Shown here: positions 21,689 through 53,858 of the stretch, piece after piece | Numbering within the stretch: position 1 is the stretch's first letter | How the letters are laid out: every line of letters begins with the position of its first letter | Notes under the pieces: model-generated | Seen by the model: the letters and a program-made list of their open reading frames with translations, nothing else | What the model was told of the DNA's origin: nothing | The model's database searches: none | Assembly (NCBI GenBank): GCA_002269645.1 | Contig: NIVC01002320.1 | Coordinates: forward strand, 120,354 to 184,353 | DNA from: Macrostomum lignano | Taxonomy: Eukaryota | DNA length: 64,000 bases | Reading direction: 5' to 3' | Position numbers and translations under genes: made by a program

Positions 21689-22380
21689 TGTCGGTAGGTC
21701 TTGTACGCGTCATTTATTGTGCGAGATACACTTGCGCAACAAAAAAAGATAGACAAAAATGAATAATTAAAGCTAAGAGAAGAGAATTAGGACACACGGG
21801 GACAAAAAAGAGGAACGCAAAGGTGTGCAGCGTGGGTCAATAGCGCAATAATTACATCAGTTAGTAATAGTAATTACAAGCGCAAACTCCCATAATAATA
21901 TGATTATATGTATAGCAGTAGTATCAATCAAATATAAACATTGCAAAGTTGACTAAGCGCTGTGCTTGACTATCAGAGAGCATTAAAATAATAAAATAAA
22001 CGCAGACTTGAGAAAATTTCGCCCCCCTCTAAAACGTGACCGACTTTAATGGGACATGTAAAATATAATTAGCTAAAAAAACTGAACAAACAATCAAATA
22101 TATCAATCAATTAACAGATAATGACAGCAAGAAAAAAGAGGAGGGTTGCGTAAACAAATTATCTTCTAAAAGAAAAAGGTGAAACAAAAATAGCTAATTT
22201 AAAAAATGTACTCAAACATATCTCAGTATCTCGCGTTTTAGATTTGATTTCAAATCGAGAAAAAATAAGAGTAAATTTTAAACACGATAAAAGCAAGGAC
22301 TACTGATAGTAAGCAGGCGCAACAATAAAGAGTTTTGGATTTTGTTTTCTGTAACTACAGGCTGTTTTTTCGCCCTTCCC

Positions 22381-22478
22381 CCAAGGCACAGTGAAGTGTA
22401 CAGGCCTAAAGATAAATAAAGTTAGGGCCGCTGTACTCTCCAGTGTGAGTGTCTGTACGTATGACTGCGTACGTATCC
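22381..22478 (+). mobile_element. Internal fragment of SINE family 1
   Basis: aaggcacagtgaagtgtacaggcctaaagataaataaagttagggccgctgtac matches the reverse complement of 5760-5820. Confidence 0.7.
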
Positions 22479-22952
22479 TAACTAAAAAACTACAATGAAA
22501 ACCAGTGCCAATATTGTTCTCAGCGTTGCGTCCGTGCCTTACTGCTGGTTGGGCCTTGGGATAAAAGCAGCACAGGATGATGGTCCTCAGAATCTCTTAA
22601 GAGATAAGCACAAATAGATTTTTGACAAACTATAAATTGAAATAGAATATACTATATAGCAAGCAGTAATATTATATCCATATTGAATAAAGTGGAGCGC
22701 ATGCTTCTGTATTTACAGGGTAATTATATCAAACTATATTTTTCCAGCTGGTTAAGTCAGACAACAGACAGACAGGTTTAGTTAACACAATGACTGTATT
22801 GGGGAGGCAGCCGTATTTTTATAGCAAAAAAAAACACTCTTGCCAAGCTGCTAAGCTATGCAGCTGTAGAGAAATGCGCGTGCATGATTAGCTTATATTA
22901 AATTATATAAGTTCGTTCAGGTGCTCATATTGCACTAGCAATAAAGGGAATG

Positions 22953-28192: not shown

Positions 28193-29732
28193 CTGCCTGG
28201 CAACAGCCGCATGTGCTGCAGAATGCAATTTCGAGTAGCAGACATTCGCAACAAGTTTTTGGCTTTTATAAGCAGATTAAATCATATATATATTGGATTC
28301 ATATATATTTTAAAGATATTTATAGGTAGGAAATACCTGACCCACTACAAAACGCCAGCTGTGTGAACTAGAGTTCAGCTTAATTGGCTATTTTATCACT
28401 GCAACTACCTTGAAAAGTAACACTAAGACTATTTTAACTGCATACTAACCATGACCAATCATTTTTAACTCAGCATTGGTAATGAACACTCTAATGCAAT
28501 AGGCTATCAACCTCATTACATGGAATATTCTTAACAAAATATTTACCCATATAAAATGCTAAACAAGGACCACTAGTATAACAGGATAGAAAACTCAAAG
28601 ATTGTTTAATTTTTGGAGGCCAATTTTCTAGAAAAAAATATTTTTTATCACAAAATCAATAATTGAATTTGAGATAAGACAGTGAAGATTATCATTCTTT
28701 TAATTTAGCATTGGATAACATGCTATTCTATTGTAGTTTAGAGTTGTGCATTTGAGTTGTATTTTAAAGATATTAATTTTTAAGCTAAACATAAGCCTAG
28801 ATTTTATCACAAATATAATTGATTCAAGAAGAAACAAAACAAGTTTAGCCTATGCCACCTATAAGTATTAATATAACTATTAAACAAGCATTCTAAGCCT
28901 GTTTTATGTTTAACATAAAAAGTATATTTTAAAATTTGTAACTTATTATAGAAGAAACAAGATAATATATAGCTAATAAAAAGAAATATCATATTGAAAA
29001 TGTTATAATTATATTATCCAAAGTAATTATCAAAAAGAAGCCATATTTGAATTTGGATATCATTATTTTCTAATAATTTAAAACATTTTAAATGATTAGT
29101 CACATAATCATATTATCTCAAACTATGCAATACAAGTCTAGCCATATAGTAGGTTTTAGTATAATAGATGTTTTTACTAGTAAAGATAGGGGCCTTAGCT
29201 TTAATTGATCATAATACATTAAAATCCTGTAAAAATTTCAAATTTCTAAAAAAGAATCTAGCATTTATTTGTATCATTAATAAAATTATTATAAAATAAG
29301 AATATTATAAAAATAAAAATAATTTATGGTATAAATATGTAGAAGGGCCTATGTTTATTCCTAGAAAATTAGTTTCCGCGAAATTAAATTCCCGCCAAAA
29401 TAACAAGTACCGTATGATTTGTTTTAATTTGTAAATTTGTTTTACTGAATAATATTTTGTTTTAATGATGCGAATAATTTGTTTTAGCTATTCATTTGTT
29501 TTAATGTTAGATATGTAAGCCAATGGAACAAGACTCTAACTAGTATAAATACAAGGCCAAAATAAAACGAAACCTCGACCTTTTTCGGGTTCCTAACTCA
29601 GTTAACAGGAAATTAAGATTTCTTGGTTCTTCTGAATTAGTCCTTTGAAGCAGTATTGCAGACTAAGTTACCGTGTTGGATAGCAAAGAGCGTTTTGCCA
29701 GTATAATGATAAGCAGGGATTGCCAGTAAAGA

Positions 29733-30876: not shown

Positions 30877-33800
30877 ATGTCGGCCACGACTGCCGGCTAC
30901 AAGATGTCTGAAAAGCAATATGCTAGCGGCAACTTCACAAGTGATGAAGTTCCGCATGAGATTCATGTGAAAATGAGCAAGAAAATTGCTCAGCTTACCA
31001 AGGTAAGGCAAGGGCTAGCTTTGAAAAATAACATTAGCTCAAGCATTGCGCTACTGTTAAAAATTCGTTTGCACCTGCGTCACTACAGTTCAATTCTGAT
31101 TGCAAGCCCATTTTCTGCTTTGAACCTTTCTAAACGCTAATAAGTATTGAACGGGTGTACAATCTAAAGCAACACGCGAATACTTAAGTTGTAGTCTTGT
31201 AGACTGTGCAATGCAGAATTATGTAGACACTACCATGAAGTATAAGATATGTGAACATAAACATTGCAACTCTAATTTATAACAGCAATTCAGCTCGTAA
31301 ATCGCTTCGCTTTACCAGAAATTTTAAATAATTCTTCCATTTTTACTTTTTGTTGCAAAACTTGATACAGAAAATATTGTTCGTCTTCAATATAATTTAT
31401 TAAACATTGAATAGATTCAAAATATTCAATACGCAAATTTTTTTGCTACTTTTAATCACAATTTAAAAAAATTATGCTGTTATTCTTATTTACCCAGCAG
31501 GGAATTTCAGCCCAAATCATCATAGATCAAGGCAAGATGCGATTTTTATTTAGCTCGTATCTTATCACAGAAGTAAAAAGTTCAATGCTGAAATCCTTCC
31601 TACAGTGTGCTTTTCATGATAATCAAATGTTTAAAGACGTCACAGAGTTCTCATCTAAAATTGCTTCTTGGCCTTGGCCTCTATTCTCACTAATCAATCG
31701 CACGTTGAGCATACATTTTCACTAATAAAACCGTTGGTATAATTCATATAATTAATAAGGACAATAACCGAAGGTTGATAATACATAAAACTTAAAGTAA
31801 ATTCAACATTTTTAAATTCCTGATCGAAGTATATGTAGTGAGACAGCACCGCAATCAAGTAAATAGTTATTTGAAGCTGGAAGAAACAGCTAACAAGCGT
31901 ATGACAAAAATGAACATAGTTTAAAAATATTATATGTGAATATTTTATTTAATTTCTTATAAACTATTTTTTACTTCTTCATTTATTTTAAACCATTGTT
32001 AACTAATTAAAAATCTAATATTTTTGTAAGATTCAATAATTTAGAAAAACCTGGATAGATATGAATATGCATGCAATAGATTAATAAGGCCATTCCAATA
32101 GTTCTAAAAGTGGATCAATGATGGGTATTTTCAAGTCAAACATCATTGCTCAATGTTTTATTTCTCCTAATCAGCAGAAGCCAATTTCGAATATCCTCAC
32201 TGCGCATATAAAATCAGCTGTAACAAATTATAAATCGCCATGAATAAATAATGGCATGCAAAACAACCAACTCTGGCACAAAGCATTGCTGTGCATTGCT
32301 GACTTGGGCACCCGATTGCCTCATTCAACTTCACCAGGTGATCTACGCACTCAACACGAAGAACGATGAGCACGAAGCTCTGGTAGACGCCCTCAAAAAA
32401 CAGCACGCGGCCGAGCTGGAGAAAGTCCTGGCCAGCAGCCGGGAGAAGCTGGCCCGTTGCCAGAGCCTCATCGGTCAGGACAGCGAGTACAGGCGGCGCA
32501 TCGGCCAACTGGAGGGCTCGCTGGCCGAGGCGCAAGAGCGGCAGGCGGCCAGTCAGCGCGAATTCGCCGACTTCAAAGTTCGAGCTGAGAGCCGCGAAAG
32601 AGAGCTGGCGCAGCAGCAGGCGCAAAAGGTTGGCTGGCCTGACTGAATGCCTGGCTTGAAATGCTTGTGAAGCCAGTTGGCTATGGATGTTGAGTTTCCC
32701 AAATCCTAGCTAAGAACTCAGGATTTATACAGCTGAGTATCTCGAAAAAATCAGGATGAAATCCGTTCATCCCATTTCATGATGGTGGGTGTTCACGATC
32801 GCGAAAATCAATGACGGAATTTAAGCTCCAGAACAACCATCGAACTCAGATGTCTCTGGTGAGCACACAATCCTGACACCACAAATCTGACACCATAATC
32901 CTGACACCACAAATCTGACAAAAAAATCCTGACACCACAATCCTGACACCACAAATCTGACACCATAATCCTGACACCACAAATCTGACACCATAATCCT
33001 GACACCACAAATCTGACACCATAATCCTGACACCACAAATCTGACACCACAATCCTGACACCACAAATCTGACACCATAATCCTGACACCACAAATCTGA
33101 CACCATAATCCTGACACCACAAATCTGACACCATAATCCTGACACTACAAATCTGACACCATAATCCTGACACCACAAATCTGACACCATAATCCTGACA
33201 CCACAAATCTGACAAAAAAATCCTGACACCACAATCCTGACACCACAAATCTGACACCATAATCCTGACACCACAAATCTGACACCATAATCCTGACACC
33301 ACAAATCTGACACCATAATCCTGACACCACAAATCTGACACCATAATCCTGACACCACAAATCTGACACCATAATCCTGACACCACAAATCTGACAAAAA
33401 AATCCTGACACCACAAACCTGACACCATAATCCTGACGCCATAAATCTGACAAAAAAATCCTGACACCACAAACCTGACACCATAATCCTGACGCCATAA
33501 TCCTGACGCCATAAATCTGACAAAAAAATCCTGACACCACAAATCTGACAAAAAAATCCTGACACCACAAACCTGACACCATAATCCTGACGCCATAAAT
33601 CTGACACCATAATCCTGACACTACAAATCTGACACCATAATCCTGACACCACAAATCTGACACCATAATCCTGACACCACAAATCTGACAAAACAATCCT
33701 GACACCACAAATCTGACACCATAATCCTGACACCACAAATCTGACACCATAATCCTGACACCACAAATCTGACACCATAATCCTGACACCACAAATCTGA

Positions 33801-36800
33801 CACCATAATCCTGACACCACAAATCTGACACCATAATCCTGACACCACAAATCTGACAAAACAATCCTGACACTACAAATCTGACACCATAATCCTGACA
33901 CCACAAATCTGACACCATAATCCTGACACCACAAATCTGACAAAACAATCCTGACACTACAAATCTGACACCATAATCCTGACACCACAAATCTGACACC
34001 ATAATCCTGACGCCATAAATCTGACACCATAATCCTGACACCACAAATCTGACACCATAATCCTGACACCACAAATCTGACACCATAATCCTGACAACAC
34101 AAACCTGACATCATAAACCTGAAACCAGAAATCTGACAACCGAAAAATCTGACACCATAAACCTGACACAAGAAATCTGACACCACAAACCTGACAATAA
34201 AATCCTGACACCACAAATCTGACACCATAAACCTGACAATAAAATCCTGACACCACAAATCTGACACCACAAACCTGACAATAAAATCCTGACACCACAA
34301 ATCTGACAATCACAAATGTGACACCACAAACCTGACACCAGAAACCTGACACGACAAAACAAAACCAAAAACCTGACACAACAAATCTGATAACCACAAA
34401 CCTGACAATCACAAACCTGACACCACAAACCTGACACCACAAACCTGACACCACAAACCTGACACCACAAACCTGACACCACAAACCTGACACCACAAAC
34501 CTGACACCACAAACCTGACACCACAAACCTGACACCACAAACCTGACACCACAAACCTGACACCACAAACCTGACACCACAAACCTGACACCACAAACCT
34601 GACACCACAAACCTGACACCACAAACCTGACAATCACAAACCTGACACCACAAACCTGATGCCACAAACCGGACACCACAAACCTGACACCACAAACCTG
34701 ACACCACAAATCTGACACCACAAACCTGATGCTACAAACCTGATGCTACAAACCTGACACCACAAACCTGACACCACAATCCTGACACCACAAATCTGGT
34801 ACCACAAACCTGACACCACAAACCTGACACCACAAACCTGACACCACAATCCTGACACCACAAATCTGGTACCACAAACCTGACACCACATACCTGACAC
34901 CACAAACCTGACACCACAATCCTGACACCACAAACCTGACACCACAAACCTGATGCCACCGAGTTCGAGAGTTTGAATGGAAAGAAAAGTTTTGGTCTTC
35001 ATTTTCCACATGCGTCACCATCATGGAACGCGTTGACGGAATAAAGTTCTGCGAACTCTGAAAAAATATTTTAAAAATTCTCAAAATGAATCTGAAAAAA
35101 ATTTGTGCATTTGCGAAACCCCAAGACTGTGAATTTTTTTCGTGTTAACCATTATGTGTCTTAAGCACCGCATTTAGTACCTTTGATTTCATTTACAACG
35201 TAACTCCGCTCAGGCGAAGGACATGACCAAACAGGTGGCGGAAATCCAGGAGGCCTACGACCGCGCAATCGAGAGATTCCAGGGCCTGCTGGGCGAGGCC
35301 AAGACCGCAAAACAGCGGGCCCTCGACGAACAGAAGGCTGCCTATGAGAAGAAACTCGATGAGGTGAACCGCAGTCAGAAAGACATTGAGGCCTCGCTGA
35401 ACGGTGCAACCCAGAAGGTGCACGAGAACTACAAGGCTGAGATTGACGGCCTGCGCACTCGTCTTGAGCAGGAGCAGGCAGGCCGCGGCAAGGACTCGCA
35501 GGACTACGAGGACAAACTGAAGAAACAGCAGCAGTTCCACCAGAAGGAGATCGAGGCGCTCAAATCGCAGCTGGAGTCCGGCAAAGCCGAGGAGCTGGAC
35601 CGGCTCAAGCGGCAGCACGACGAGCTGCGCAAGGAGCACCTGGCGCACCAGGCCGACGCTAGGAAGGAGCGCCAGGGCCTCATCGAGAAGCTGGCAAAGG
35701 CGGAGGACTTGGTCGAGCAGCTGCGCCAGGACCTCAACAATGTCGGACTGTCTGACTCGGCCAAGGACGCTGAGATTTCTCGCCTTTCAGCGGAGGTTCG
35801 TTTGAGTTTATTTGCATTTTTCTATCAATCCTAACCTTGGTTTCGATAATACTCGCCCCTAATCTTTGCACTTCCAGCTCAAGACATCGTCAGAAGAACT
35901 GAAATCGCAGCAAGAATCGGTGAGAAGTCTGCGCATCGAGCTGCAGACTGCAACAGAAAAGTGCGAGCAGCAGCTCAATGATATTGTGCAGAAATCTGGT
36001 GAGTCTTTGACTTTTTAACAAACACTTAAGCCTCCTTGGTCATAGAGAACAGGGCACTTTAATGAGAATTCTCTTCTCACCCGTAGAGTCCATCGGTGAG
36101 CTGCAGGCGGCGGTGCTTCAGCACGAGGGCACGATTAAGCGCCAAGCGGAGGAGCTGGCCCAGCTGCAGCGCCGATGGGAAGACCAGGAGCGGCAGCAGA
36201 GCGACAAAGGCCGCGAACAGGACGGGCTGCTGCGGCAGGCGGAGAAGCAGGCGCAGCGCTTGGAACAGCAGCTGCAACAGCTGCGCGAAGAGAAAATGCA
36301 AGCGGAACGGCAGGCAGAGGAGGAGAGGCAGCGGCTTGTAGCCGAAATGGACTCCAAGGAGCGGGCGCTCCTGCAGAAGCAGGACAAGGAAGCCAAGCAA
36401 GCCCTGAAAAAGTATCAGGACGAGCTGAAGAAGCAGAAAGCCGGCTTCGATTCCGAGATTGAACTGCTAAACAAAGAGAACTCTAGCAAGCTTGAGCTGA
36501 TGCAAAACGCTGCGGAGAAGGAGAAGAAGGAGGCTCAGAAGGAGCTTTCCCGGTTGAAGCGCGAGCTCGAGGCGCAACTGAAAGCGCGCGATGAAAAGCT
36601 GCGCGAGCTGGAACGCCAGCTGCGGGACAAGGAGTCCGGCCTTGGCAGCGTCTCTGAGACCATGGAGGCGCTGAAGGCGGAGAAAGCGCGGCTGCAGGCG
36701 GAGGCCGAAGAAGCGGTCGGTCGCGCCAAAGTTGAAGCGGCAGAGGCAGCGAGACTGCGGCAGGAGCTGGAGCGGCTGCGGTCGGTTTATGAGCAACGGC

Positions 36801-39378
36801 TCAAGGAGTCCAAGAAGGATCTGAATCAGAAAATGAACGAGCTCTCCGCCGACCTGGACAAGAAGTGGGCGGACACGCTGCGCCGTGAGACTGCCAAGCT
36901 GCGTCAGGAGTACGACATCCAGAGCAAGGCCGATAGCCAGGCCGGCCTTAAAGCGTTCAAAAAGTTGAAGGAAGAGGAGGCGGCCGAGGCGGCGCGGCAG
37001 GCGGAGGCGCGCGAGCGGAAGCTAAAAGAGGAAATCGAAGCACTGCGCGAGGCGGCTGCGGCAGCGGAGGCCGCCTGGCAGTCTCGACTGGACGAGGCTC
37101 GCGCCGAGGCGGAGAAGCAAGTGGCCGCGCTTCAGCGGGAGCTGCAGGCAGCGGAGAAGCGAGCCGCAGGCGAGTTGGAGAAACTCCGGCGTGAGAAAGA
37201 TGGCGAGCTGGCGGCAACGAAGGACAGCCTGAATCGGCAGCTGCTGGAGCTGCAGTCGGCCGGCAGCGGCCTGGCCGAAGAGACGAAGCGCAGGGCGCAG
37301 CTGGAGGCGCGAGCGGAGCTGGAGAAGCTTCGGCTGGAGCTTGAGCAAGCCAAGCAAAAAGCCCTGGACGAACTGAGCAGCCGGATGGAGCGCGAGAAGG
37401 AGCAGGTGCGAAGCGAGATGGTCGGCCGATTTGCGGCTGAGCTTGACGGGCACTCGTCCAGCTATCGGCAGCAGCTGGCTGAGGTGCAGGCGGCCCTCGA
37501 GCAGGCCAAGGCGGAGGCAGAGGCGCGGGAACGGGCGCTGGCCCAGCGCGCCGATTCGCTGCGCGGCGAGTGCGCGGAGCGGGAGCGCAAGATTGACAAA
37601 CTGCTGCGGGACGCGGAGGCGGCTCGAGAGGAGGCGACGGCGCTGCGGCGTAACCTGGAGGCGAAGAGTCGAGAGGCTGCAGAGGCCAAGTCCGAGTTTG
37701 ATGAAGGAATCAGGTGATTCTGGGGATAAATCAGTGATTAGATCTTTGTTTACTTGTGTCAAAACGTGAATACAATATTTCACACTTTTGTTCTCGCGCA
37801 GAAAACGGGAGGAAGAGATCACCGTGCATTTCGAGGCCCGCCTGCTGAAAGTCCGGGAGGAGGCGGCTTCTGAGAAGCAGCGAGTCATCACAGAGTTCTC
37901 AAAGGCGCAGGAGCTGCTAAAGATGAAGATTTTGGACTATAAGCAGCGCTTGGAGGACAGCGAGGACCGGCTGCGAAAGCGGGACCCCAGGCCCGAAGAT
38001 GTGGAGACTATTCAGGGCCTCCGGGCGCGGCTCAGCGAGCGCGAAGCCGAGGTGGCCAAGCTGGTGGTGAGCTTTCGAGGAAATCCTTAACTAACGGGAC
38101 AGAAATTTGCTTTCAAATTTGTACACGTGATGTCATTGAAAGACTTTGAAAGAAAGAAAGAAATGTAAATATCGACCATCCCAGAAGATAGTGGTAATAA
38201 GCGGCTTGAATTGTCTTAACTAAAAGACTTTAAATACTACTGTCAATGAGTAGACTGCAAACTCGTTCGCATTTATGGAAAAGTATGTTTGAATGTCCTT
38301 CTTTCACTTTCCCCGTCACTGCAGGAGGACATGCGGTTCTATAAGAACGAGTTGATCAACAGGGAGACCAACTACAACAAGGTGTTTAATAGTACAAATG
38401 GGCCGCATGTTGGACTCGTGAATCCACTGGCTGCCAAGGTTTGTCACTGAGTTGCGTATTCACACTAGCTTACTGAGGAGCTTAGGTACAGACACCAGAC
38501 TAATGAGAAGCTTAGGTACAGACACCAGACTACTAAGAAGCTTAGGTACAGACACCAGACTACTGAGGAGCTTAGGTACAGACACCAGACTACTGAGAAG
38601 CTTAGGTACGGACACCAGACTACTGAGTGACTTAGGTACGGACACCAGACTACTGAGAAGCTTAGGTACAGACACCAGACTACTGAGGAGCTTAGGTACA
38701 GACACCAGACTACTGAGTGGCTTAGGTAAATACACCAGACTACTGAGGAGCTTATAGGTACGAACACCAGACTACTGAGTGGCTTAGGTACAGACACCAG
38801 ACTACTGAGGAGCTTAGGTACAGACACCAGACTACTGAGTGGCTTAGGTACAGACACCAGACTACTGAGAAGCTCAGGTACGGACACCAGACTACTGAGT
38901 GGCTTAGGTAAAGACACCAGACTACTGAGGAGCTTAGGTACGGACACCAGACTACTGAGTGGCTTAGGTACAGACACCAGACTACTGAGGAGCTTAGGTA
39001 CGGACACCAGACTACTGAGTGGCTTAGGTACAGACACCAGACTACTAAGGAGCTTAGGTACAGACACCAGACTATTGAGGAGCTTAGGTACAGACACTAG
39101 CTTACTTCGTGGCTTAGGTACAGACACCAGACTACTGAGGAGCTTAGGTACGGACACCATCCTGCACCCGATCTCACTCCATATTGCAGCAGAAGAAGCG
39201 CAACTCAGTGTCGGATTCTCCCAGCCAGTCGGCCGCCAGCTCCACCGGCTCTCTGAAGGGCAAGGGCCGCCTGGCGCCGCTGCCCGGTTCGCCGATGCAC
39301 GACGAGCCGTTGACGCCGTCGAAGCCGCTGCCGCCGGCCTCCGTGCTGGCTTCCGGGTCTAGCAAGAAGTTCTTGTAG
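30877..39378 (+). CDS. FAM184A: FAM184A/B-like coiled-coil protein, 8 exons, ~1104 aa
   Basis: Exons 30877-31002, 32338-32628, 35214-35795, 35878-35998, 36087-37713, 37802-38066, 38325-38438, 39190-39378 (3315 nt, phases consistent). Family motifs HVKMSKKIAQLTK|VIYALNTKNDEHE and FYKNELINRETNYNKVFN; C-terminal LAPLPGSPMHD...SKPLP. Confidence 0.93.
32868..34958. repeat. 14-15-bp minisatellite in FAM184 intron 2
   Basis: Alternating units tctgacaccataat / cctgacaccacaaa, drifting to acctgacaccacaa toward the 3-prime end. Confidence 0.97.
38462..39158. repeat. 30-bp minisatellite filling FAM184 intron 7
   Basis: Unit cttaggtacagacaccagactactgaggag, ~23 copies. Confidence 0.96.
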
Positions 39379-39909
39379 CCAATCATCACGCTGTAGCTAA
39401 AAATATCCTTTAGAAACTTTCGTTGACTGACTTCGAGTGCAGGGTGCAAAACCAGTTGAAAACTACTCCAATTTCAATGGCGTATTTTCATGTGCTGGAC
39501 AAAATTCTTCAGAATCTTCTCGACTGATCGAGCGCGCTTTGATTGGTCAGTTGTTGGCTTTGCTTTCTAGTGCATGTGTACTTAACTGTGAACTTTATGA
39601 TCGGCTTTTCTTGTAGTACAACACTGTTTATTGTGAATAATGCTTATTTTACATTGACTACTTCGAAATACTTAATACACATATGCAAACTCAGAATTAT
39701 AGATCTGATAATTTTATTCATTAGCCTAAAGCGCTGAGACTCTTTCTGAGCTTTGTTCATGCTGTCAATGTCTCAGGTAGGCAACTTTTAGTTCGATAGT
39801 TCAACACATTTAAAGTGAATGCGTGAGAGGCGAGAGCCTAATGCAACCTTTGTTATCCTGCTCGTTTATCATATCAACCTAGTGAGAATATTTAATTCAA
39901 ATGAATAAA

Positions 39910-41345
39910 ATAACCGCTGGAGCTGTGGTCCTGCACAGGACGCCGCCTTCGCGAAGTGGCAGGCTCTCTGTTGTCGTCCGATCCAGTTTAAGCACATTTG
40001 GACTCTACAAAGAATCTGATTCTGGAGTGCGACGCCTCACCATACTGCCTGGGTTCAACCGCATGGTGCATCGCGCTGGTGCTTCTCTGTTGGGAGCCGA
40101 CGCCCTAAGCCGCCTCAGTTTCAACGCCCATATAGCTTGTTATGCTGCTGGGTTACCTGGACGATGGACCCGGGACAGCAGTCCAAGTGAAAGCCTTGAC
40201 CCGGCGGGATCCTGTGCGTTCTCGAGCGTTGTATTTTACAAAAAGTGTCACAGTCAGCGTCACGTCAGTTGTAGCTCAAGCGGTCAAGCGGTGCATCCGA
40301 AATGGCCTACGCAGCGAGTCACGGACCTCAGAATCAGCACTTAGCACTCATCAAATAACTGGTCGAAGACTCAGCAGCATCCTTATCCTTGGAGTCCATC
40401 GGGCGCTGTCAGCGACTATAGGGACGACTCAGCGGTGGTCACCCCGTTACTGAGGACCTCTAAGGACGTAACCCACATGTCGTCGCACTACCCGGTCGTT
40501 ACCATCGAATCCGCAGTGGTAGGATGCAGGCCAGCAACACCAAATACTCTAGCCGGCTTCATTCAAACCGTCGGCCCAAAAGTCTCTGGCCGGGACCGTG
40601 TCGCCAGGCTTGTACGTCCGGAATCGGACCTCGCTGTCGTGTTGCTCCTTCTGCTGGCTCTGCTTGCTTGCTTAGGTCAGGACGAGCTGTGTTCAGTAGT
40701 GTTCTTAGCTTACGTCTGATGGGGAGCTCGCAGGAAGAAACACCGGTAGTCGTATGCGGTGTGGCACGATAAGTCGATAACTCAGCAAAAACCGTGTAAC
40801 CTCCTCCAAAGATCTGTCACGCTGCTTTTCCCGAGACCGCTTTAGCGTCTGGGCAGCTCTGGACGGCCAGACCATTAAACGCTGAATAATGGATGCCACC
40901 CGGGCGTGCTGGATACCGTTCTTACGCAGGAATTCTGACATCTATTCGAGCCTGTTATCCAACACAATAATGTCTGGGAAACAATGGGTCGCAAAAACTT
41001 GAAACTTCTGGGTAGTGGCTGACGAAGTTGCAAAAGCAACCACACGCACGTCTAAACATTTGGAATTGGCGTCGACCACCACCACTACCGGCATCTTGCC
41101 AGCTGCCGCTTCAGCGTAGTCATGTGCAATCGCGGTCTATCTGGTCACGGCCAGGGAAGCATCGGCGAAGGTATTGGCGCCGGTACTCTTTGGCAAGGCA
41201 ATCAATCTCATCGTCCATGTCAGGCCACCAGAAGTAGCCCAGGGCCAACGATTTCATGCGCGACGCTCCTGAATGGCACTGGTGGATCACTTGGAGCAAC
41301 ACAGCCCGAGCTGCAACTGGGATGACTCAGGCCAGCCAGTTTTTG
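39910..41345. mobile_element. Degenerate Gypsy/Ty3 LTR-retrotransposon pol fragment (RNase H end on +, integrase on -)
   Basis: Plus strand: VHRAGASLLGADALSRL and TAVQVKALTRRDP. Minus strand: LLQVIHQCHSGASRMKSLALGYFWWPDMDDEI (H2C2 region), VVVDANSK, IIVLDN, EFLRKNGIQH, TRFLLSYR. Multiple frameshifts. Confidence 0.85.
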
Positions 41346-41426
41346 TGACGGAATAAACTGTTTTTGTGGTTTTAGTTATAGTTTTGTCCGGACGTTTAAA
41401 AAAGTCTTTCATTTTGGTTGGTGCAT

Positions 41427-41463
41427 CAAGGACTACTTAACGAAGTAACTTCAGTGGTCCTTG
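41427..41463. mobile_element. 37-bp inverted-repeat mini-element / putative P-like excision footprint with 8-bp TSD
   Basis: tggtgcat[caaggactact...agtggtccttg]tggtgcat. Confidence 0.75.
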
Positions 41464-42049
41464 TGGTGCATTCAGTTGCTTGATTGTCGCATCATTTTTC
41501 TTATTTGTCCAATATTTTGTTACAATATTGTTCGTCACTATAGTTGTAGGATCTCTACCAACAGATATACTGCAAAGTATTCTCACTTATGACATTTTCA
41601 TATCCTTTACGCAATTCTGAAAGTTTTTGGTGCTCCAAGATTTGATCTTCATCGGGCAAGGATGTGGTAGCGTGGCCTTAGTGCGATGTCTACATGTACA
41701 ATGTAGGTAAGAAATGTTTAACCAAAGTTCAAATTTTACGCAGCCTGCTACTACAGGGATGAATACAAAAATGTACGCAAGAGATGACAGTGTTGAGCAT
41801 GTCAGACTCAGAAGAGACCATTTTCGAGTACTACGCGTGTACATAGTACAATTACAAAAATTACTGACTAAACGGTACATACAGTGCTTAAACTTTTCCC
41901 TTTGCAATCAGCTTGTCCTGACTTCCTTTTTAGTCAGTGCAACACTTTGTGAATAATATTTCCCTTTTATCGACTAGCGACACGTACTAATATAAATACA
42001 ACACATCTGCTAGCTCGGACTTATAGATCGAATGATGTTATCCTTAGTC

Positions 42050-42590
42050 TAAAACTTTGAGACTTTCTGAGCTTTAGCCCATGCTGCTCCGTATATTGAT
42101 TTGGGCGAATTTCTCAGGTGGCACATTGGGGAATCAATCCGACTTTGGGGGGGGGGGATTTGTTTGGCAAGCCATTCCCGTTCTGTGCGAGTGGTTGAAG
42201 ACTCCCCTATTGGTCGCAGAGGCATTATGGATTCGCTGCGGGTCAGCGAACCCCCGGTCAGGACCAGGATGCGACCTGGCCTAAAGAGTGTCACTGCTTA
42301 GGATTTGCGTTATGCAGCGCATTCCCAGGCCTTCTCAGTTTCCGTGTAACGCTGAAGCGCATTGCGAGCGTCTGCTCGGTAAGTCAGTAAAGCGATATTG
42401 CTATGGCTGAATTCCATGTGCATTTAACTTGTATCGCACTCATTTTTCCACCTAAAGAGGGGTTCATATTACCGCGAGTACCTCTGCCGGTCGTCCAAGA
42501 TTGCTCAAATTTGATCAATCTTGGACCCGCAACAGTTCGAATTTTAAAGTACAGCTCTACAGTATGTAAGCAGAGTTTCAAGTACATTTT
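42050..42590 (-). mobile_element. Possible decayed Penelope-like GIY-YIG endonuclease fragment
   Basis: Minus strand reads AIQVKC...Y*LTEQTLAMRFS...NALH, resembling the VYxIxC...YIGxTxxxLxxRFxEH...SAL pattern; interrupted by stops. Confidence 0.4.
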
Positions 42591-42663
42591 AGTATTTATT
42601 TAGCTCTATACTTGTAAAGTGTCTCAAGTCCCTCACCAATACGATTGGCATGAGTAGATCAAC

Positions 42664-42682
42664 CAAGGACCACTAGTCCTTG
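42664..42682. mobile_element. 19-bp inverted-repeat mini-element / putative P-like excision footprint with 8-bp TSD
   Basis: agatcaac[caaggaccactagtccttg]agatcaac. Confidence 0.75.
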
Positions 42683-43338
42683 AGATCAACGTGCAGAGCA
42701 GGCCCAATCAGCCTGACTTATTTAACAAAAAATGAATTGGCTCAAGAAGTATGCTGCTTCTCCAGAGACGATGTTGTCGCCATCCTTTCATCCCCTCTGT
42801 TGCATCTTCTTTTTGAGAAATTTCTTTGCGCCCTGGGCTGATGCAGCTTAGAAAATACTGTGCGGATTTTTTGGCAGGTTGAAATCTACGAGTATTTTCT
42901 GGTGTACTCAACGGGAAATAGCAGACAGTGCAGCCTCCCAGAGCAGCAGGTGGTTACTCATTCTATTGTCTTGGCATGAGTGCCGGCTTGAGCTCTCTGA
43001 CCTTGAGCTCTAAGTTGAGCAGGACTTTTGCAGTAGCGCCCATCTGCTCACGACTTTTTAGGAAACTCTTCATTGCCTGAGCTCTCATTGTTTGGCGTGA
43101 AGTTGAGTGACAGACAACAGCAAGCAGACTTTGACAGTCCAGAACTGACATATTCTCGACTGTAGCTTCTTCTAGCTAACACTACCAAACTGCATTTTTC
43201 ATTGGCTTAAAACATGCTTATATTTTACAAGACACGGCAATACTCTTTACACTGTAGATTTCACACCTGCCGATAAATTTGGTTCAGGATGCTAGATCAT
43301 ATGGCGTACGGTAATGCACAGATTCATGAATTCATGAT

Positions 43339-46300
43339 CTTCCTCACCAAGTAGCCAATCTGTCTCATGCTGCAGATGAGAGCTTCCTCACCAGGTAGCC
43401 ATTCTGTCTCATGCTGCAGATGAGAGCTTCCTCACCAGGTAGCCATTCTGTCTCATGCTGCAGATGAAAGCTTCCTCACCAACTAGCCATTCTGTCTCAT
43501 GGATGAGAGCTTCCTCACCAACTAGCCATTCTGTCTCATGGATGAGAGCTTCCTCACCAAGTAGCCATTCTGTCTCATGGATGAGAGCTTCCTCACCAGG
43601 TAGCCATTCTGTCTCATGGATGAGAGCTTCCTCACCAACTAGCCATTTTGTCTCATGCTGCAGATGAGAGCTTCCTCACCAGGTAGCCAATCTGTCTCAT
43701 GCTGCAGATGAGAGCGTCCTCACCAGGTAGCCAATCTGTCTCATGCTGCAGATGAGAGCTTCCTCACCAACTAGCCATTCTGTCTCATGCTGCAGATGAG
43801 AGCTTCCTCACCAGGTAGCCATTCTGTCTCATGCTGCAGATGAGAGCTTCCTCACCAACTAGCCATTCTGTCTCATGCTGCAGATGAGAGCTTCCTCACC
43901 AGGTAGCCAATCTGTCTCATGCTGCAGATGAGAGCTTCCTCACCAGGTAGCCAATCTGTCTCATGCTGCAGATGAGAGCTTCCTCACCAGGTAGCCAATC
44001 TGTCTCATGCTGCAGATGAGAGCTTTCTCACCAGGTAGCCAATCTGTCTCATGCTGCAGATGAGAGCTTCCTCACCAACTAGCCATTTTGTCTCATGCTG
44101 CAGATGAGAGCTTCCTCACCAGGTAGCCAATCTGTCTCATGCTGCAGATGAGAGCTTCCTCACCAGGTAGCCAATCTGTCTCATGCTGCAGATGAGAGCT
44201 TCCTCACCAGGTAGCCAATCTGTCTCATGCTGCAGATGAGAGCTTCCTCACCAACTAGCCATTCTGTCTCATGCTGCAGATGAGAGCTTCCTCACCAACT
44301 AGCCATTCTGTCTCATAGATGAGAGCTTTCTCACCAGGTAGCCAATCTGTCTCATGCTGCAGATGAGAGCTTCCTCACCAACTAGCCATTCTGTCTCATG
44401 CTGCAGATGAGAGCTTCCTCACCAACTAGCCATTTTGTCTCATGCTGCAGATGAGAGCTTCCTCACCAGGTAGCCAATCTGTCTCATGCTGCAGATGAGA
44501 GCGTCCTCACCAGGTAGCCATTCTGTCTCATGCTGCAGATGAAAGCTTCCTCACCAACTAGCCATTCTGTCTCATAGATGAGAGCTTCCTCACCAACTAG
44601 CCATTCTGTCTCATAGATGAGAGCTTCCTCACCAAGTAGCCATTCTGTCTCATAGATGAGAGCTTCCTCACCAGGTAGCCATTCTGCCTCATGCTGCAGA
44701 TGAGAGCTTTCTCACCAGGTAGCCAATCTGTCTCATGCTGCAGATGAGAGCTTCCTCACCAACTAGCCATTCTGTCTCATAGATGAGAGCTTCCTCACCA
44801 AGTAGCCATTCTGTCTCATAGATGAGAGCTTCCTCACCAGGTAGCCATTCTGTATCATAGATGAGAGCTTCCTCACCAGGTAGCCATTCTGTCTCATGCT
44901 GCAGATGAGAGCTTCCTCACCAACTAGCCATTCTGTCTCATAGATGAGAGCTTCCTCACCAACTAGCCATTTTGTCTCATGCTGCAGATGAGAGCTTTCT
45001 CCCCAAGTAGCCATTCTGTCTCATAGATGAGAGCTTCCTCACCAACTAGCCATTCTGTCTCATAGATGAGAGCTTCCTCACTGACTAGCCATTCTGTCTC
45101 ATAGATGAGAGCTTCCTCACCAACTAGAAATTCTGTCTCATAGATGAGAGCTTCCTCACCAACTAGCCATTCTGTCTCATAGATGAGAGCTTCCTCACCA
45201 ACTAGCCATTCTGTCTCATAGATGAGAGCTTCCTCACCAACTAGCCATTCTGTCTCATGCTGCAGATGAGAGCTTCCTCACCAACTAGCCATTCTGTCTC
45301 ATAGATGAGAGCTTCCTCACCAACTAGCCATTCTGTCTCATAGATGAGAGCTTCCTCACCAACTAGCCATTCTGTCTCATAGATGAGAGCTTCCTCACCA
45401 ACTAGCCATTCTGTCTCATAGATGAGAGCTTCCTCACCAACTAGCCATTCTGTCTCATGCTGCAGATGAGAGCTTCCTCACCAACTAGCCATTCTGTCTC
45501 ATGGATGAGAGCTTCCTCACCAACTAGCCATTCTGTCTCATAGATGAGAGCTTCCTCACTAACTAGCCATTCTGTCTCATAGATGAGAGCTTCCTCACCA
45601 GGTAGCCATTCTGTCTCATGCTGCAGATGAGAGCTTCCTCACCAAGTAGCCATTCTGTCTCATGCTGCAGATGAGAGCTTCCTCACCAGGTAGCCAATCT
45701 GTCTCATGCTGCAGATGAGAGCATCCTCACCAGGTAGCCAATCTGTCTCATGCTGCAGATGAGAGCTTCCTCACCAACTAGCCATTCTGTCTCATGGATG
45801 AGAGCTTCCTCACCAACTAGCCATTCTGTCTCATGCTGCAGATGAGAGCTTCCTCACCAGGTAGCCATTCTGTCTCATAGATGAGAGCTTCCTCACCAAC
45901 TAGCCATTCTGTCTCATAGATGAGAGCTTCCTCACCAACTAGCCATTCTGTCTCATAGATGAGAGCTTCCTCACCAACTAGCCATTCTGTTTCATAGATG
46001 AGAGCTTCCTCACTAACTAGCCATTCTGTCTCATAGATGAGAGCTTCCTCACCAACTAGCCTTTCTGTCTCATAGATGAGAGCTTCCTCACCAACTAGCC
46101 ATTCTGTCTCATAGATGAGAGCTTCCTCACCAAGTAGCCATTCTGTCTCATAGATGAGAGCTTCCTCACCAACTAGCCATTCTGTCTCATGCTGCAGATG
46201 AGAGCTTTCTCCCCAGGTAGCCATTCTGTCTCATGGATGAGAGCTTCCTCACCAACTAGCCATTCTGTCTCATGGATGAGAGCTTCCTCACCAACTAGCC

Positions 46301-48730
46301 ATTCTGTCTCATGCTGCAGATGAGAGCTTCCTCACCAACTAGCCATTCTGTCTCATGGATGAGAGCTTCCTCACCAACTAGCCATTCTGTCTCATAGATG
46401 AGAGCTTCCTCACCAACTAGCCATTCTGTCTCATGCTGCAGATGAGAGCTTCCTCACCAACTAGCCATTCTGTCTCATAGATGAGAGCTTCCTCACCAAC
46501 TAGCCATTCTGTCTCATAGATGAGAGCTTCCTCACCAACTAGCCATTCTGTCTCATAGATGAGAGCTTCCTCACCAACTAGCCATTCTGTCTCATAGATG
46601 AGAGCTTCCTCACCAGGTAGCCAATCTGTCTCATGCTGCAGATGAGAGCTTCCTCACCAGGTAGCCAATCTGTCTCATAGATGAGAGATTCCTCACCAAC
46701 TAGCCATTCTGTCTCATAGATGAGAGCTTCCTCACCAACTAGCCATTCTGTCTCATAGATGAGAGCTTCCTCACCAACTAGCCATTCTGTCTCATGCTGC
46801 AGATGAGAGCTTCCTCACCAGGTAGCCATTCTGTCTCATGCTGCAGATGAGAGCTTCCTCACCAGGTAGCCATTCTGTCTCATAGATGAGAGCTTCCTCA
46901 CCAGGTAGCCATTCTGTCTCATAGATGAGAGCTTCCTCACCAACTAGCCATTCTGTCTCATGGATGAGAGCTTCCTCACCAACTAGCCATTCTGTCTCAT
47001 GCTGCAGATGAGAGCTTCCTCACCAGGTAGCCAATCTGTCTCATGCTGCAGATGAGAGCTTCCTCACCAGGTAGCCATTCTGTCTCATGCTGCAGATGAG
47101 AGCTTCCTCACCAGGTAGCCATTCTGTCTCATAGATGAGAGCTTCCTCACCAACTAGCCATTCTGTTTCATAGATGAGAGCTTCCTCACTAACTAGCCAT
47201 TCTGTCTCATAGATGAGAGCTTCCTCACCAACTAGCCTTTCTGTCTCATAGATGAGAGCTTCCTCACCAACTAGCCATTCTGTCTCATAGATGAGAGCTT
47301 CCTCACCAACTAGCCATTCTGTCTCATAGATGAGAGCTTCCTCACCAACTAGCCATTCTGTCTCATGCTGCAGATGAGAGCTTTCTCCCCAGGTAGCCAT
47401 TCTGTCTCATGGATGAGAGCTTCCTCACCAACTAGCCATTCTGTCTCATGGATGAGAGCTTCCTCACCAACTAGCCATTCTGTCTCATGCTGCAGATGAG
47501 AGCTTCCTCACCAGGTAGCCAATCTGTCTCATGCTGCAGATGAGAGCTTCCTCACCAAGTAGCCATTCTGTCTCATGCTGCAGATGAGAGATTCCTCACC
47601 AACTAGCCATTCTGTCTCATAGATGAGAGCTTCCTCACCAACTAGCCATTCTGTCTCATGCTGCAGATGAGAGCTTCCTCACCAACTAGCCATTCTGTCT
47701 CATAGATGAGAGCTTCCTCACCAACTAGCCATTCTGTCTCATAGATGAGAGCTTCCTCACCAACTAGCCATTCTGTCTCATAGATGAGAGCTTCCTCACC
47801 AACTAGCCATTCTGTCTCATAGATGAGAGCTTCCTCACCAACTAGCCATTCTGTCTCATAGATGAGAGCTTCCTCACCAACTAGCCATTCTGTCTCATAG
47901 ATGAAAGCTTCCTCACCAGGTAGCCAATCTGTCTCATAGATGAGAGATTCCTCACCAACTAGCCATTCTGTCTCATAGATGAGAGCTTCCTCACCAACTA
48001 GCCATTCTGTCTCATAGATGAGAGCTTCCTCACCAACTAGCCATTCTGTCTCATGCTGCAGATGAGAGCTTCCTCACCAGGTAGCCATTCTGTCTCATGC
48101 TGCAGATGAGAGCTTCCTCACCAGGTAGCCATTCTGTCTCATAGATGAGAGCTTCCTCACTAACTAGCCATTCTGTCTCATAGATGAGAGCTTCCTCACC
48201 AACTAGCCATTCTGTCTCATGGATGAGAGCTTCCTCACCAAGTAGCCATTCTGTCTCATGCTGCAGATGAGAGATTTCTCCCCAGGTAGCCATTCTGTCT
48301 CATAGATGAGAGCTTCCTCACCAACTAGCCATTCTGTCTCATGCTGCAGATGAGAGCTTTCTCCCCAGGTAGCCATTCTGTCTCATAGATGAGAGCTTCC
48401 TCACCAACTAGCCATTCTGTCTCATAGATGAGAGCTTCCTCACTGACTAGCCATTCTGTCTCATAGATGAGAGCTTCCTCACCAACTAGCCATTCTGTCT
48501 CATAGATGAGAGCTTCCTCACCAACTAGCCATTCTGTCTCATAGATGAGAGCTTCCTCACCAACTAGCCATTCTGTCTCATAGATGAGAGCTTCCTCACC
48601 AAGTAGCCAATCTGTCTCATGCTGCAGATGAGAGATTTCTCCCCAAGTAGCCATTCTGTCTCATGCTGCAGATGAGAGATTTCTCCCCAAGTAGCCATTC
48701 TGTCTCATGCTGCAGATTATAGCTTTCTCA
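43339..48730. repeat. 5.4-kb 39/44-bp satellite array
   Basis: Unit gatgagagcttcctcacca(ac/gg)tagccattctgtctcat(a/gctgca). Confidence 0.98.
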
Positions 48731-50084: not shown

Positions 50085-51217
50085 TAAGCTGAAGTTTCAA
50101 TCTGGGAAAGAAATGCTGAATGTTGTAAAATGTAAGAATAGGAGATCCAATTAATTGGTTATTTCTTGAGTTCCGACTTTCGTTCCCAGCTCTTCCGTTC
50201 TCCATAGCGCTTTGAGTAGTCATTGAGCCCCAAAGAAGCTAACCTACATTGAAGAAAAGATGTTTTGAGATTCTTGCGATTTCGAATTTAAATTTTAATT
50301 CGAACGACTATATACAATGCTCGGGCCATTATTCGCTTTGGTTCTACTGTCAGTAGCTGAAACTCGAACGTAATTTATTCACGAAATGGTTTCTACCCCA
50401 ATCAGTTTCAAATTACCAGAGCCCAGAGTAGATGCCAAGTCAAGGCAAGCCGTCCCTGGACGAGTCCGCCTCTTCTGGGACAGCTCGCGTCAGAGGATTT
50501 CTGGCTTGGTTTTTTGAAATTTAATTTGACAGAAATAAGAAACTTTGACGGTCAAACTTTGCGCAGCTGCGACGAAATTCCCAGATACGATGATTTATTC
50601 ATTCACTAGGAATTCGGTTGGGCAAAGCACAGTAAAGAAGTGCGGCCAGCAACAGGCTTCTTACTTTACTTCGGAACACAGTTCTCTGAGCTGTTGTGAG
50701 TATACAAGATAGTGTTCTCATGTCAAACGGTATTCACTATTGTGCTCAAAGGCAATTGCAAGCCAACTGGCCTACATAGTAACAAAAGCTGAGCCAGTAG
50801 AAACAATGCTGCACCTGTCAACACCGCGGCCTCATAGTTGTTCGGGTCGGGAGAACAGCTGCTTGTTGACATTGGCGCCGCTGGTGGCTGCATTCCTGAG
50901 TTGCATGGTGAAACAGGTAAGAAAAGAATGCACCGACATGCTGTAGTCAAGGTCAAGTGCGTCAATTGTAGGAAGATGTGCTCACAATGAATGCCTCAAT
51001 GAACTCTAACGTAGAGCATGAATTTCATCCTAAAGCATAAATATTCGATGCCTCGAGAAACTATAATTGAGATGCCCCTAACCCTGTCTTTCCCAGATCC
51101 CAGATCTCAAATCCTCGCCAGCCCTTAAGTACGTATAATGATCGAAACTTTATAGGCTTCTCGTGAGGCTCCAATGCCCGAGCGTCGGTCTCAGACTAGA
51201 TGAGAGCTTCCTCACCA

Positions 51218-51522
51218 TTATTATTATTATCACTATTACACCTGCCCTAATGGCCAGATGTGCAACCGACAGCTCAGCCGCAGCTATTGCGCGGCGCATT
51301 GATGAAGGCCGCGTACGGCTGTTCAGTCCAAGAACTGGGGGGTCGCCACACACCCTCAATTATCCCAGCTAATGCTGGCAACCATTTTACAGCTGGGTGA
51401 ACTGAAGCAATGCAGAGTTAAGTGTCTTGCTCAAGAACGCAAATTGTTCCAGTGGGATCGAGAATCGAACCCCCGACCTTTAAGTCATGAGTCTGACGCT
51501 CTAAACACTGGGCTACAGCCTC
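51218..51522 (-). mobile_element. tRNA(Met-like)-derived SINE with CORE-like central domain (family 2)
   Basis: Minus strand head gtagcccagtgtttagagcgtcagactcatgacttaaaggtcgggggttcgatt. Central cttgagcaagacacttaactct...cagttcacccagctgtaaaatgg resembles the MIR CORE. (ata)n tail; second copy at 63608. Confidence 0.8.
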
Positions 51523-51922
51523 TTCTATTGTCTCAGAAGAATTCAACGGATCCTGATTGACCTAATAACACTTGCTAACTACGAATCGATCTGAACTCAT
51601 GGGGCGGGCGGAATTCCTAGCTAAACAGAGCCTTGAATGACTCAAGTGAGTTCAGTCAAGCCGATATAGATTCAAACCGCAGATTCTGTTATGATGAGAG
51701 CGGCCTCTGGAGCATACATACAGTCCGCTGGTGAATACTGCCAGTTCAAATTGATACTGTGTATTCTGAATATTAAGTGGGAAGCTCCGATTAATTGTAG
51801 CGCAGGCTGATAAGCTAATTAATTAATTGGCTTGGCCAACACGAGCCATATTTGCCTGGCGGCCGCATTGCTTTTCGGTGAATAGGACAGAAGCTTATTG
51901 CCTTCTCTGCCAGTTTGACCTA

Positions 51923-52614
51923 GCTTCCTCTAGCACCTGTGCTAGCCTCCATTGGCTTCCTCTAGCACCTGTGCTAGCCTCCATTGGCTTCCTCTAGCAC
52001 CTGTGCTAGCCTCCATTGGCTTCATCTAGCACCTGTGCTAGCCTCCATTGGCTTCCTCTAGCACCTGTGCTAGCCTCCATTGGCTTCCTCTAGCACCTGT
52101 GCTAGCCTCTATTGGCTTCCTCTAGCACCTGTGCTAGCCTCTATTGGCTTCCTCTAGCACCTGTGCTAGCCTCTATTGGCTTCCTCTAGCACCTGTGCTA
52201 GCCTCTATTGGCTTCCTCTAGCACCTGTGCTAGCCTCTATTGGCTTCCTCTAGCACCTGTGCTAGCCTCCATTGGCTTCCTCTAGCACCTGTGCTAGCCT
52301 CCATTGGCTTCCTCTAGCACCTGTGCTAGCCTCCATTGGCTTCCTCTAGCACCTGTGCTAGCTTCCATTGGCTTCCTCTAGCACCTGTGCTAGCCTCCAT
52401 TGGCTTCCTCTAGCACCTGTGCTAGCCTCTATTGGCTTCCTCTAGCACCTGTGCTAGCCTCCATTGGCTTCCTCTAGCACCTGTGCTAGCCTCCATTGGC
52501 TTCCTCTAGCACCTGTGCTAGCCTCCATTGGCTTCCTCTAGCACCTGTGCTAGCCTCCATTGGCTTCCTCTAGCACCTGTGCTAGCCTCCATTGGCTTCC
52601 TCTAGCACCTGTGC
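51923..52614. repeat. 32-bp minisatellite with an internal palindrome, ~22 copies
   Basis: Unit gcttcctctagcacctgtgctagcctc(c/t)attg; degenerate copies continue to ~52737. Confidence 0.97.
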
Positions 52615-53260
52615 TTGCTTTCATTGGGCTCAAATTACACCTGTGCCAGCCTGACTAGCCTGAAATGACACCTGTGCTAGCCTGACTGGTCCCATTGACA
52701 CCTGTGCTAGCCTGACTGGTCCCAATGACACCTGTGTTTGCATCGCATTTATCTATGAATTTACTACAGCTGTCGCATATATCGGGAAAACAAATATGAT
52801 TGAAAATTCGCACCTTACCGACTTCAAAATCTACGGACTAGCACAGGCCGCACCTGCTCTCTGTCCACTCGCAATGACCCGCGCAGCTGAGAGAGAATTG
52901 CCCGCTGCGTGGCGCGTAACGGGAAGCGCAGCACAAGAGGCTGCTTAGCGAGAAGAGCGAGGAACCGCTGCTTGAATTTTCGAATACGCTTCACGCTTAA
53001 ATTGTAATTCGATTGGACATCCTTGCAGTCTGCTCTCCTTCCCATACTTCTCTATAATGGCACTTCCACTGAATTGCTGAGTTGCCGGAAAAATTCTTAC
53101 TCTTAGCAGTATTACGCCCGTAGTTGGGCATTACTTGAGCTGTGTGGGGAGACCAGGCTCTCAGATGCAGGGATTGGGAAGCTATGAGCCTTCTTATTCT
53201 GAATATGATGGAAAGTATAGCTGAACGATTCTCAAAAACACGTAGATTCTCATAGAGCTG

Positions 53261-53384
<124 letters not shown>

Positions 53385-53858
53385 CAGGCAGGCATAAAGG
53401 CAGCGAAGAGATGCAGATACGGTTTGAGGATTGAAAGCAAGCTTAGTGAGGCTCAGGCACAGATGAAGCTTGTCAGTGCAGTCCGAACCCCTCATTGCTC
53501 GTCACAATTGCGATTATTCAAAATTTTCTTCCCCCTCCTCTCCCTCTCCCCGTTCCCTCCTGGCTGCCACAGGCCGGCCTCAATTAGAACAGGGGGCGGA
53601 GGATTCCCAAGCCTGGCTTAGCCAAAAAATTTTAAACCAACCAGTGGCAGCCGGCACTGAGTGGCGGACCTGCCGGGCACGGAGGCTTCAGGCGCTATAA
53701 AATTATCATTTTATACAGTAGCTGTGAAACCCACATTTTTGAAAGAGTCGGAGAGAGAGAAAAGGAAAGTCAATCCAGCCGGAAGCCGTGTTGCCAGGCA
53801 AACAAGGATCTGTCTGGCGCGCAGGAAAGCAGCTCAGTCAAAGCCTGCCTACCAACCA

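Follow-up and report, generated by a model that had tools for sequence, protein, structure and literature searches.

When the P element of Drosophila is excised, its transposase leaves 17-nt non-complementary 3′ stubs behind, and these are end-joined bluntly, through 1–4 nt of microhomology or with short templated insertions (PMC2895639; PMC7776569). Elements of the hAT, MULE and Transib type form hairpins on the flanking DNA, and zero element nucleotides are left (PMC5499845). In the literature searched, no account was found of hAT or P elements endogenous to the flatworm Macrostomum lignano. Here we describe two very short transposon remnants from this genome, which are probably excision scars, that is, terminal-repeat ends that were retained at the donor site and joined to one another.

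The remnants lie in a stretch of 64,000 nucleotides (hereafter the window) of contig NIVC01002320.1 (positions 120,354–184,353), assembly Mlig_3_7. The larger of the two (CAAGGACTACTTAACGAAGTAACTTCAGTGGTCCTTG; 41427–41463, + strand) is 37 bp long and is flanked by identical copies of the 8-bp target site duplication (TSD) TGGTGCAT at 41419–41426 and 41464–41471. An initial annotation, made from the letters of the DNA, had described it as a mini-element derived from a transposon and flanked by an 8-bp TSD of its own, and both the TSD and the termini (CAAGGACTACT…AGTGGTCCTTG) are exact to the base across 41419–41471. The termini form an 11-nt inverted repeat with a single mismatch, at position 8, where the T-type left end (CAAGGACTACT) has T and the C-type right end (reverse complement CAAGGACCACT) has C, in agreement with the one differing position reported before. 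The palindrome GAAGT-A-ACTTC occupies the centre of the element (41442–41452), and as single-stranded DNA the 37-mer folds in silico into a near-perfect hairpin (−8.4 kcal/mol, z = −4.45).

The companion element is separated from the 37-mer by 1,200 bp and measures only 19 bp (CAAGGACCACTAGTCCTTG; 42664–42682, − strand). It is enclosed by a different TSD, AGATCAAC, at 42656–42663 and 42683–42690, and the whole structure (42656–42690) is again exact. Its C-type end is on the left and its T-type end on the right, so the reversed orientation that had been suspected is real. The two mini-elements had also been taken for independent events, and this view holds: their TSDs and internal junctions differ, and they point in opposite directions. 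A search of about 150 kb of M. lignano DNA yielded no further copy of either the 37-mer or the 19-mer. That the two differ in size and junction, and that each is unique, speaks for separate repair events and against a unit that was amplified.

Coincidence was already deemed improbable in the initial annotation, on the strength of two cases, and is now ruled out. A search of the window for an 8-mer, followed by CAAGG…CCTTG and by the same 8-mer, recovers only the two mini-elements, plus a structure at 22294–22558 in which one extra base precedes the second TSD copy. When the window was shuffled 300 times by a first-order Markov model, no such structure of up to 60 bp arose, and the mean number of structures of up to 3 kb was 0.007. 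When all 1024 possible 5-mers were tried as termini, CAAGG was the only one to yield such structures outside tandem arrays. Simply counting the 11-mer tests chance less stringently (7 observed versus 1.3 expected, with 1 of 100 shuffles reaching 7). The mini-elements are a real transposon feature, and statistically this is secure.

The M. lignano genome contains three subgenome copies that diverged recently, the SNP divergence being about 2% (PMC10733133). Paralogous contigs were found via the cluster members of a channel protein encoded in the window, where a 612-aa intron-less ORF (56791–58671) corresponds to an amiloride-sensitive sodium channel and is 100% identical to BOX15_Mlig004551g1; the ORF taken from its first ATG has no exact record match. 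One of these contigs, NIVC01000969.1, is 98.5% identical to window positions 38884–43400 (4457 of 4524 positions) and holds both mini-elements at the same sites and with the same TSDs (2635–2671 and 3872–3890). Their presence in both contigs excludes a sequencing or assembly artefact, and it places both elements in the germline before the split of these two copies. The 19-mer is identical in the two contigs and the 37-mer differs solely by a central A to G change at window position 41447; judged from these comparisons, the mini-elements evolve roughly as fast as the neutral DNA around them. Two other contigs, NIVC01002543.1 (the third copy) and NIVC01004528.1, end short of both sites because tandem-array lengths differ. 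The number of scars seen in M. lignano is two, with no empty or full allele among the copies reached. Window positions 51159–64000 are duplicated at 99.7–99.9% identity at the start of NIVC01004528.1, which extends past the window; a redundant or overlapping piece of assembly is a more probable explanation of this duplication than a third subgenome copy.

The intergenic DNA that holds the 37-mer is 15 kb long, and a degraded LTR-retrotransposon integrase ends ~100 bp away from the element. The integrase remnant (40560–41302, − strand) retains an HHCC zinc-finger-like motif and a DDE core, is interrupted by frameshifts and stops, and has database relatives that are at best 29–37% identical. The window is extraordinarily dense in minisatellites: at least 20 arrays, many of them intronic, are spread over positions 1302–62781, with periods of 14–39 bp and lengths of up to 5.4 kb (for example 43339–48709, 19332–21689, 25233–27782 and 32866–34953). 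Array lengths vary several-fold between the paralogous contigs: the 39-bp array spans about 5.4 kb in the window versus about 0.5 kb in NIVC01000969.1, and the 32-bp array 0.7 kb in the window versus about 4 kb in NIVC01002543.1. The host genes include a FAM184-like coiled-coil gene (30877–39378, + strand), modelled with 8 exons, 1104 aa and clean GT-AG introns, two of which are minisatellite-filled; its copy in NIVC01000969.1 is annotated with 1110 aa. An ankyrin-repeat gene (22956–28192, − strand) is modelled with 3 exons and 528 aa and has a probable SOCS box at the C-terminus; one of its introns contains a 30-bp array (2.5 kb). Neither the 1104-aa nor the 528-aa model has an exact match in the protein collection, and a homologue search with the coiled-coil ORF 36062–37717 gave no match, being swamped by low-complexity words. 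Between 7858 and 18555 (− strand), long ORFs are interleaved with coding-looking tandem repeats and include a VWA domain (12392–13039); the run may be a single giant gene for a repetitive secreted protein.

The terminus CAAGGACYACT is not confined to the mini-elements; it also heads four longer sequences on the + strand of the window, at 6698, 22294, 23793 and 28564. One of these is a complete non-autonomous copy of 266 bp (22294–22559) with the 8-bp TSD GATAAAAG on both sides (22286–22567), although its right end is imperfect (…GGGCCTTG+G). In M. lignano, the family has perfect 8-bp TSDs at 41419/41464, 42656/42683 and 22286/22560. About 100 bp of the interior of this copy (about 22378–22478) is a piece of an unrelated interspersed repeat, i.e. 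captured filler DNA, and the presence of such foreign DNA shows the family to be subject to gap repair with template switching as well. The same repeat, with the core CAGTGAAGTGTACATGCCTAACGATAAATAAAGTTAGGGCCGCTGTACACTC, occurs at 5730–5823 (− strand), at 18068–18134 of NIVC01004528.1 and at 178–255 of a further sequence (L002); its identity as a tRNA-derived SINE was considered and dropped, as there was no tRNA or Rfam match.

The other three copies are one-ended, since TSD matching detected no right ends for them. The first (6698–6855, + strand; left end CAAGGACTACTAAAGTAGAAGG…) sits in the loop of a large inverted repeat; this foldback (5449–7526) has inverted arms of 175 nt (96% complementarity) and 79 nt (99%), flanked by inverted blocks of the 14-bp tandem repeat GCCAGCCGACGTTT. 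The second (23793–24620, + strand) lies in the other intron of the ankyrin-SOCS gene and begins with the 14 nt CAAGGACTACTTAA, which also form the left end of the 37-mer. The third (28564–28700, + strand) has a C-type end, CAAGGACCACTAGTATAAC…, whose first 14 nt recur as the left 14 nt of the 19-mer. About 30 nt can be aligned among the five available ends, comprising CAAGGACYACT, an AGTA block and a GCGCAAC-like block. A Pfam scan of the 63 window ORFs outside host genes detected no transposase, and neither the window as a whole nor about 90 kb of paralogous contigs yielded one; with no transposase domain in the window ORFs, whether of the P type (THAP, RNase-H-like and GTP-binding) or of the hAT type (BED finger and hAT dimerisation), all copies there are non-autonomous. 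The superfamily may accordingly be either P-like or hAT-like, as far as sequence can tell.

We favour the interpretation that a transposon visited both sites and was excised again. A cut-and-paste transposon of this family, with the terminus 5′-CAAGGACYACT, ends conserved over ~30 nt and 8-bp target duplications, would have inserted at TGGTGCAT and, in reversed orientation, at AGATCAAC 1.2 kb away, and the two insertions may even represent one element hopping locally. The T-type and C-type end in each scar, in opposite orientation, fit such an asymmetric element at both sites. Its own transposase would later have excised it by a cut after which the flanking DNA still carries roughly 10–20 nt of each terminal repeat, and host end joining would have ligated the two non-complementary stubs, the 37-bp scar involving fill-in and perhaps a brief templated insertion, the 19-bp scar trimming and 1–4 nt of microhomology. 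The resulting scars would be inert and evolve neutrally. Because both copies of the target duplication survive, such a scar looks like a miniature element.

The junctions can be read in more than one way, on the assumption of a single source element whose T-type end is CAAGGACTACTTAA… and whose C-type end is CAAGGACCACTGAAGT…. The 37-mer may comprise 18 + 19 nt with zero filler; it reads equally well as 14 nt, a 7-nt filler (CGAAGTA) and 16 nt, the 14-nt part being identical to the 23793 end and the 16-nt part matching the 6698 end at 14 of 16 positions. GAAGT within this putative filler is a 5-nt inverted copy of the neighbouring ACTTC and resembles a snap-back templated insertion. The 19-mer would consist of 11 nt of the C-type and 9 nt of the T-type end overlapping by 1 nt (T) or, when compared with the 28564 copy, of 14 + 9 nt overlapping by TAGT. 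In all junction readings of both scars, at most 19 nt are kept per end, and both remnants retain 9–19 nt of each element end between intact TSDs. The initial annotation had considered the length of 37 compatible with ~17 nt from each end plus 3 nt, in keeping with P-type overhang repair. The architecture, in which the TSD copies enclose at most 19 nt of each end and 0–7 nt of filler, indeed matches P-element footprints recovered in experiments (PMC2895639), and a P-like long stagger is the most likely, if unproven, form that the excision took. The sum 17 + 17 + 3 is arithmetic only and does not single out a cut of 17 nt, since 18 + 19 and 14 + 7 + 16 fit equally well; nor can the family be called P-type, given that the transposase is absent from the window and from ~90 kb of paralogous contigs.

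Remnants of this kind could also have come about by extreme internal deletion, in which gap repair by SDSA from a sister or homologous copy is interrupted ~10–20 nt into the element and the nascent ends are joined. SDSA with subsequent joining of incomplete ends is what P{wa} excision most commonly leads to in wild-type flies (PMC2895639). The route works for any superfamily, including hAT (from Ac to Ds type), and implies no staggered cut. The hAT terminal consensus is YARNG, and CAAGG agrees with it letter by letter (Y-A-R-N-G); the 8-bp TSD is likewise that of hAT elements. The 100-bp unrelated repeat inside the 266-bp copy is typical of the filler capture that accompanies interrupted gap repair, and possible filler and microhomology at both junctions likewise speak for this route. 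Against it, only one of the three two-ended copies in the window exceeds 37 bp, and none of the four retained ends is longer than 19 nt, an improbable outcome if breakpoints were spread over an element of hundreds of bp. The metagenome relatives described below add to the difficulty, as five independent loci of one family keep the same ~19–20 nt per side, and random stops of DNA synthesis predict otherwise. On balance, we regard internal deletion as rather unlikely, albeit the most serious competitor to excision scars.

The same architecture is found in other eukaryotes. JGI metagenome contigs were scanned for CAAGGACYACT-N(0-30)-AGTRGTCCTTG, with a permitted total length of 22–52 bp, and gave 53 matches in 52 loci. 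At least 25 of the 53 have perfect or one-mismatch 7-bp direct repeats abutting their termini, and one has 8 bp. After merging orthologous contigs, the TSD-bearing matches represent ~12 independent loci, tip-only and 26–52 bp long, on contigs with low ORF density and animal or eukaryotic genes (CUB, syntaxin/SNARE and a weak match to a rhodopsin-type receptor). These contigs share no similarity with the M. lignano sequences. Example loci from the set L007–L058, which stems from several sample series, are L024 2338–2380, L029 2265–2307, L050 530–574 and L041 1077–1116. A 32–34-bp element with the TSD AATTATC (L007 109–142, L037 2145–2176, L046 1029–1061 and L055 227–260) is conserved on four contigs that are 90–99% identical and carry a syntaxin/SNARE ORF; its interior holds its own TSD in inverted form (GATAATT).

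The remaining metagenome matches are in prokaryote-like contigs and look like terminator-type hairpins. In 596 Gb of bacterial and archaeal genomes, the same pattern has 17 matches, and in phage contigs 2, none with a TSD; relative to these controls, TSDs are enriched among the metagenome matches (Fisher exact p = 2.5e-4). That identical 11-nt stems exist in prokaryotes lends some substance to the idea that the M. lignano structures are chance palindromes or functional hairpins, terminator-like or protein-binding, which happen to lie between direct repeats. Yet 0 of the 19 control matches have a TSD, the structure is missing from each of the 300 shuffles, longer transposon copies in the window begin with the same terminus, and tRNA and Rfam scans of the window matched nothing; such an origin is exceedingly improbable.

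Two families stand out among the relatives. Family F1 comprises five loci with identical arms (CAAGGACTACTAGATTACTT and AGTAATCTAGTAGTCCTTG, about 19–20 nt each) that vary solely by 0–6 nt at the centre, giving element lengths of 39–45 bp. Fixed arms with variable centres are the pattern of end joining on stubs of fixed length, as documented for P footprints of Drosophila with their 17-nt stubs (PMC2895639; PMC7776569). Family F2 consists of several diverged loci of near-constant size (48–52 bp) and could be an amplified tip-only MITE. All TSD-confirmed elements taken together measure 19–52 bp with a median of 38, but the metagenome lengths are bounded at 52 bp by the search pattern, so that the overall spread is no proof of clustering, which only F1 displays.

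F2 and, by its five loci of 39–45 bp, F1 bring up a further possibility, namely that the remnants are mobile micro-MITEs, tip-only elements that themselves transposed and made their TSDs on arrival. Tip-only MITEs are known for mariner elements: MADE1 (MiHsmar1) is an 80-bp primate mariner MITE of palindromic shape with a few bp between two 37-bp repeats, which contain the transposase-binding site, and it exists in thousands of near-identical copies with TA target duplications. The M. lignano scars resemble MADE1 in their two terminal repeats, the few bp between them and the palindromic shape; unlike MADE1, each of the two is unique, they measure 19 and 37 bp, and their TSDs are 8 bp long. The pair differs in size and junction, and the many near-identical copies of one size that mark a MADE1-like MITE do not appear in about 150 kb of M. 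lignano DNA. The initial annotation had named a MITE family of fixed size as the finding that would speak against its reading; the 48–52-bp metagenome relatives partly approach this, and the 19- and 37-bp M. lignano copies do not, both being unique. Furthermore, 19 bp is too short for two transposase-binding ends or for the bending of a synapse, and the identical arms and different centres of F1 are the reverse of what descent from a master copy with random mutation would produce. P-type elements, in addition, require internal binding sites beyond the terminal repeats (PMC7776569). We consider transposition of the remnants themselves improbable in M. lignano.

Excision scars thus remain our preferred explanation. 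Excision footprints and tip-only remnants are of a known kind; the family itself is undescribed in the literature searched, and the conservation of CAAGGACYACT across eukaryotes, including unrelated metagenome contigs, is striking and points to a broadly distributed family. It is conceivable, and we suggest this tentatively, that an uncharacterised and widespread animal lineage is at work, with an invariant CAAGGACYACT terminus, 7–8-bp TSDs and a cut ~19–20 nt inside the ends, a stagger that would be P-like but longer. If so, natural scars in the genomes of flatworms and other marine eukaryotes would report the cleavage geometry of the enzyme directly, and long-stagger chemistry, so far Drosophila-specific, would extend to another lineage and perhaps to another superfamily. 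If the M. lignano remnants are direct scars, they provide a fossil read-out of how many nucleotides per end an unknown transposase leaves behind, they make the end-joining routes of the flatworm germline visible (microhomology and possible templated filler), and they imply that cut-and-paste transposition of the family goes back to before the recent genome duplication of M. lignano. In practical terms, palindromes of 20–50 bp with TSDs are easily overlooked by repeat annotation and can be mistaken for regulatory hairpins.

How, then, does the family compare with known systems? Two superfamilies can be set aside. Merlin elements have a conserved 5′-GG and 8–9-bp TSDs (PMC8101967) versus the 5′-CA…TG-3′ termini found here, and Dada was rejected for its absence of terminal repeats and its snRNA and tRNA targets. 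Similar to the M. lignano family, non-autonomous hAT elements and Ds-type deletion derivatives have 8-bp TSDs and short imperfect repeats, and Ds-type derivatives with filler DNA recall the 266-bp copy. The 7-bp TSDs of the metagenome relatives are unusual for hAT, and the element nucleotides that remain in the scars are at odds with a direct hAT footprint, in which none are left; if the family is hAT, the 37-mer is a product of internal deletion, with which hAT is compatible, and not a direct footprint. The zebrafish P-like element Pdre is an animal family outside insects with 13-bp repeats, 8-bp TSDs and many internally deleted copies (PMC10983969); its termini are CATACCTGTCAAC, and its deleted copies are hundreds of bp long rather than tip-only (PMC10983969).

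The comparison with the P element of Drosophila is the closest and cuts both ways. Members of the P superfamily have terminal inverted repeats of about 13–31 bp as well as subterminal repeats and internal transposase-binding sites; from the M. lignano family, what is available is five ends that can be aligned over ~30 nt. The P termini (CATGATGAAAT) are unrelated in sequence to CAAGGACYACT, and neither a THAP-type nor a P-type transposase came to light for the M. lignano family in the ~90 kb of paralogous contigs or in the window. P leaves 17 nt, whereas the 37-mer, if free of filler, requires 18–19 nt per side and F1 19–21 nt. P generates 8-bp TSDs, as against the 7 bp of the metagenome relatives; both lengths fall within the 7–8 bp of the P superfamily, as do those of the M. 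lignano copies. In the anatomy of the footprint, the two agree: like the M. lignano scars, P footprints have an 8-bp TSD on both sides, keep ~8–19 nt of each end and show joins that use 0–4 nt of microhomology or contain a short insertion, templated in part, and the scar sizes of 19–37 bp are within the published P range, which includes blunt joins of 34 bp and microhomology joins of 30 bp (PMC2895639; PMC7776569).
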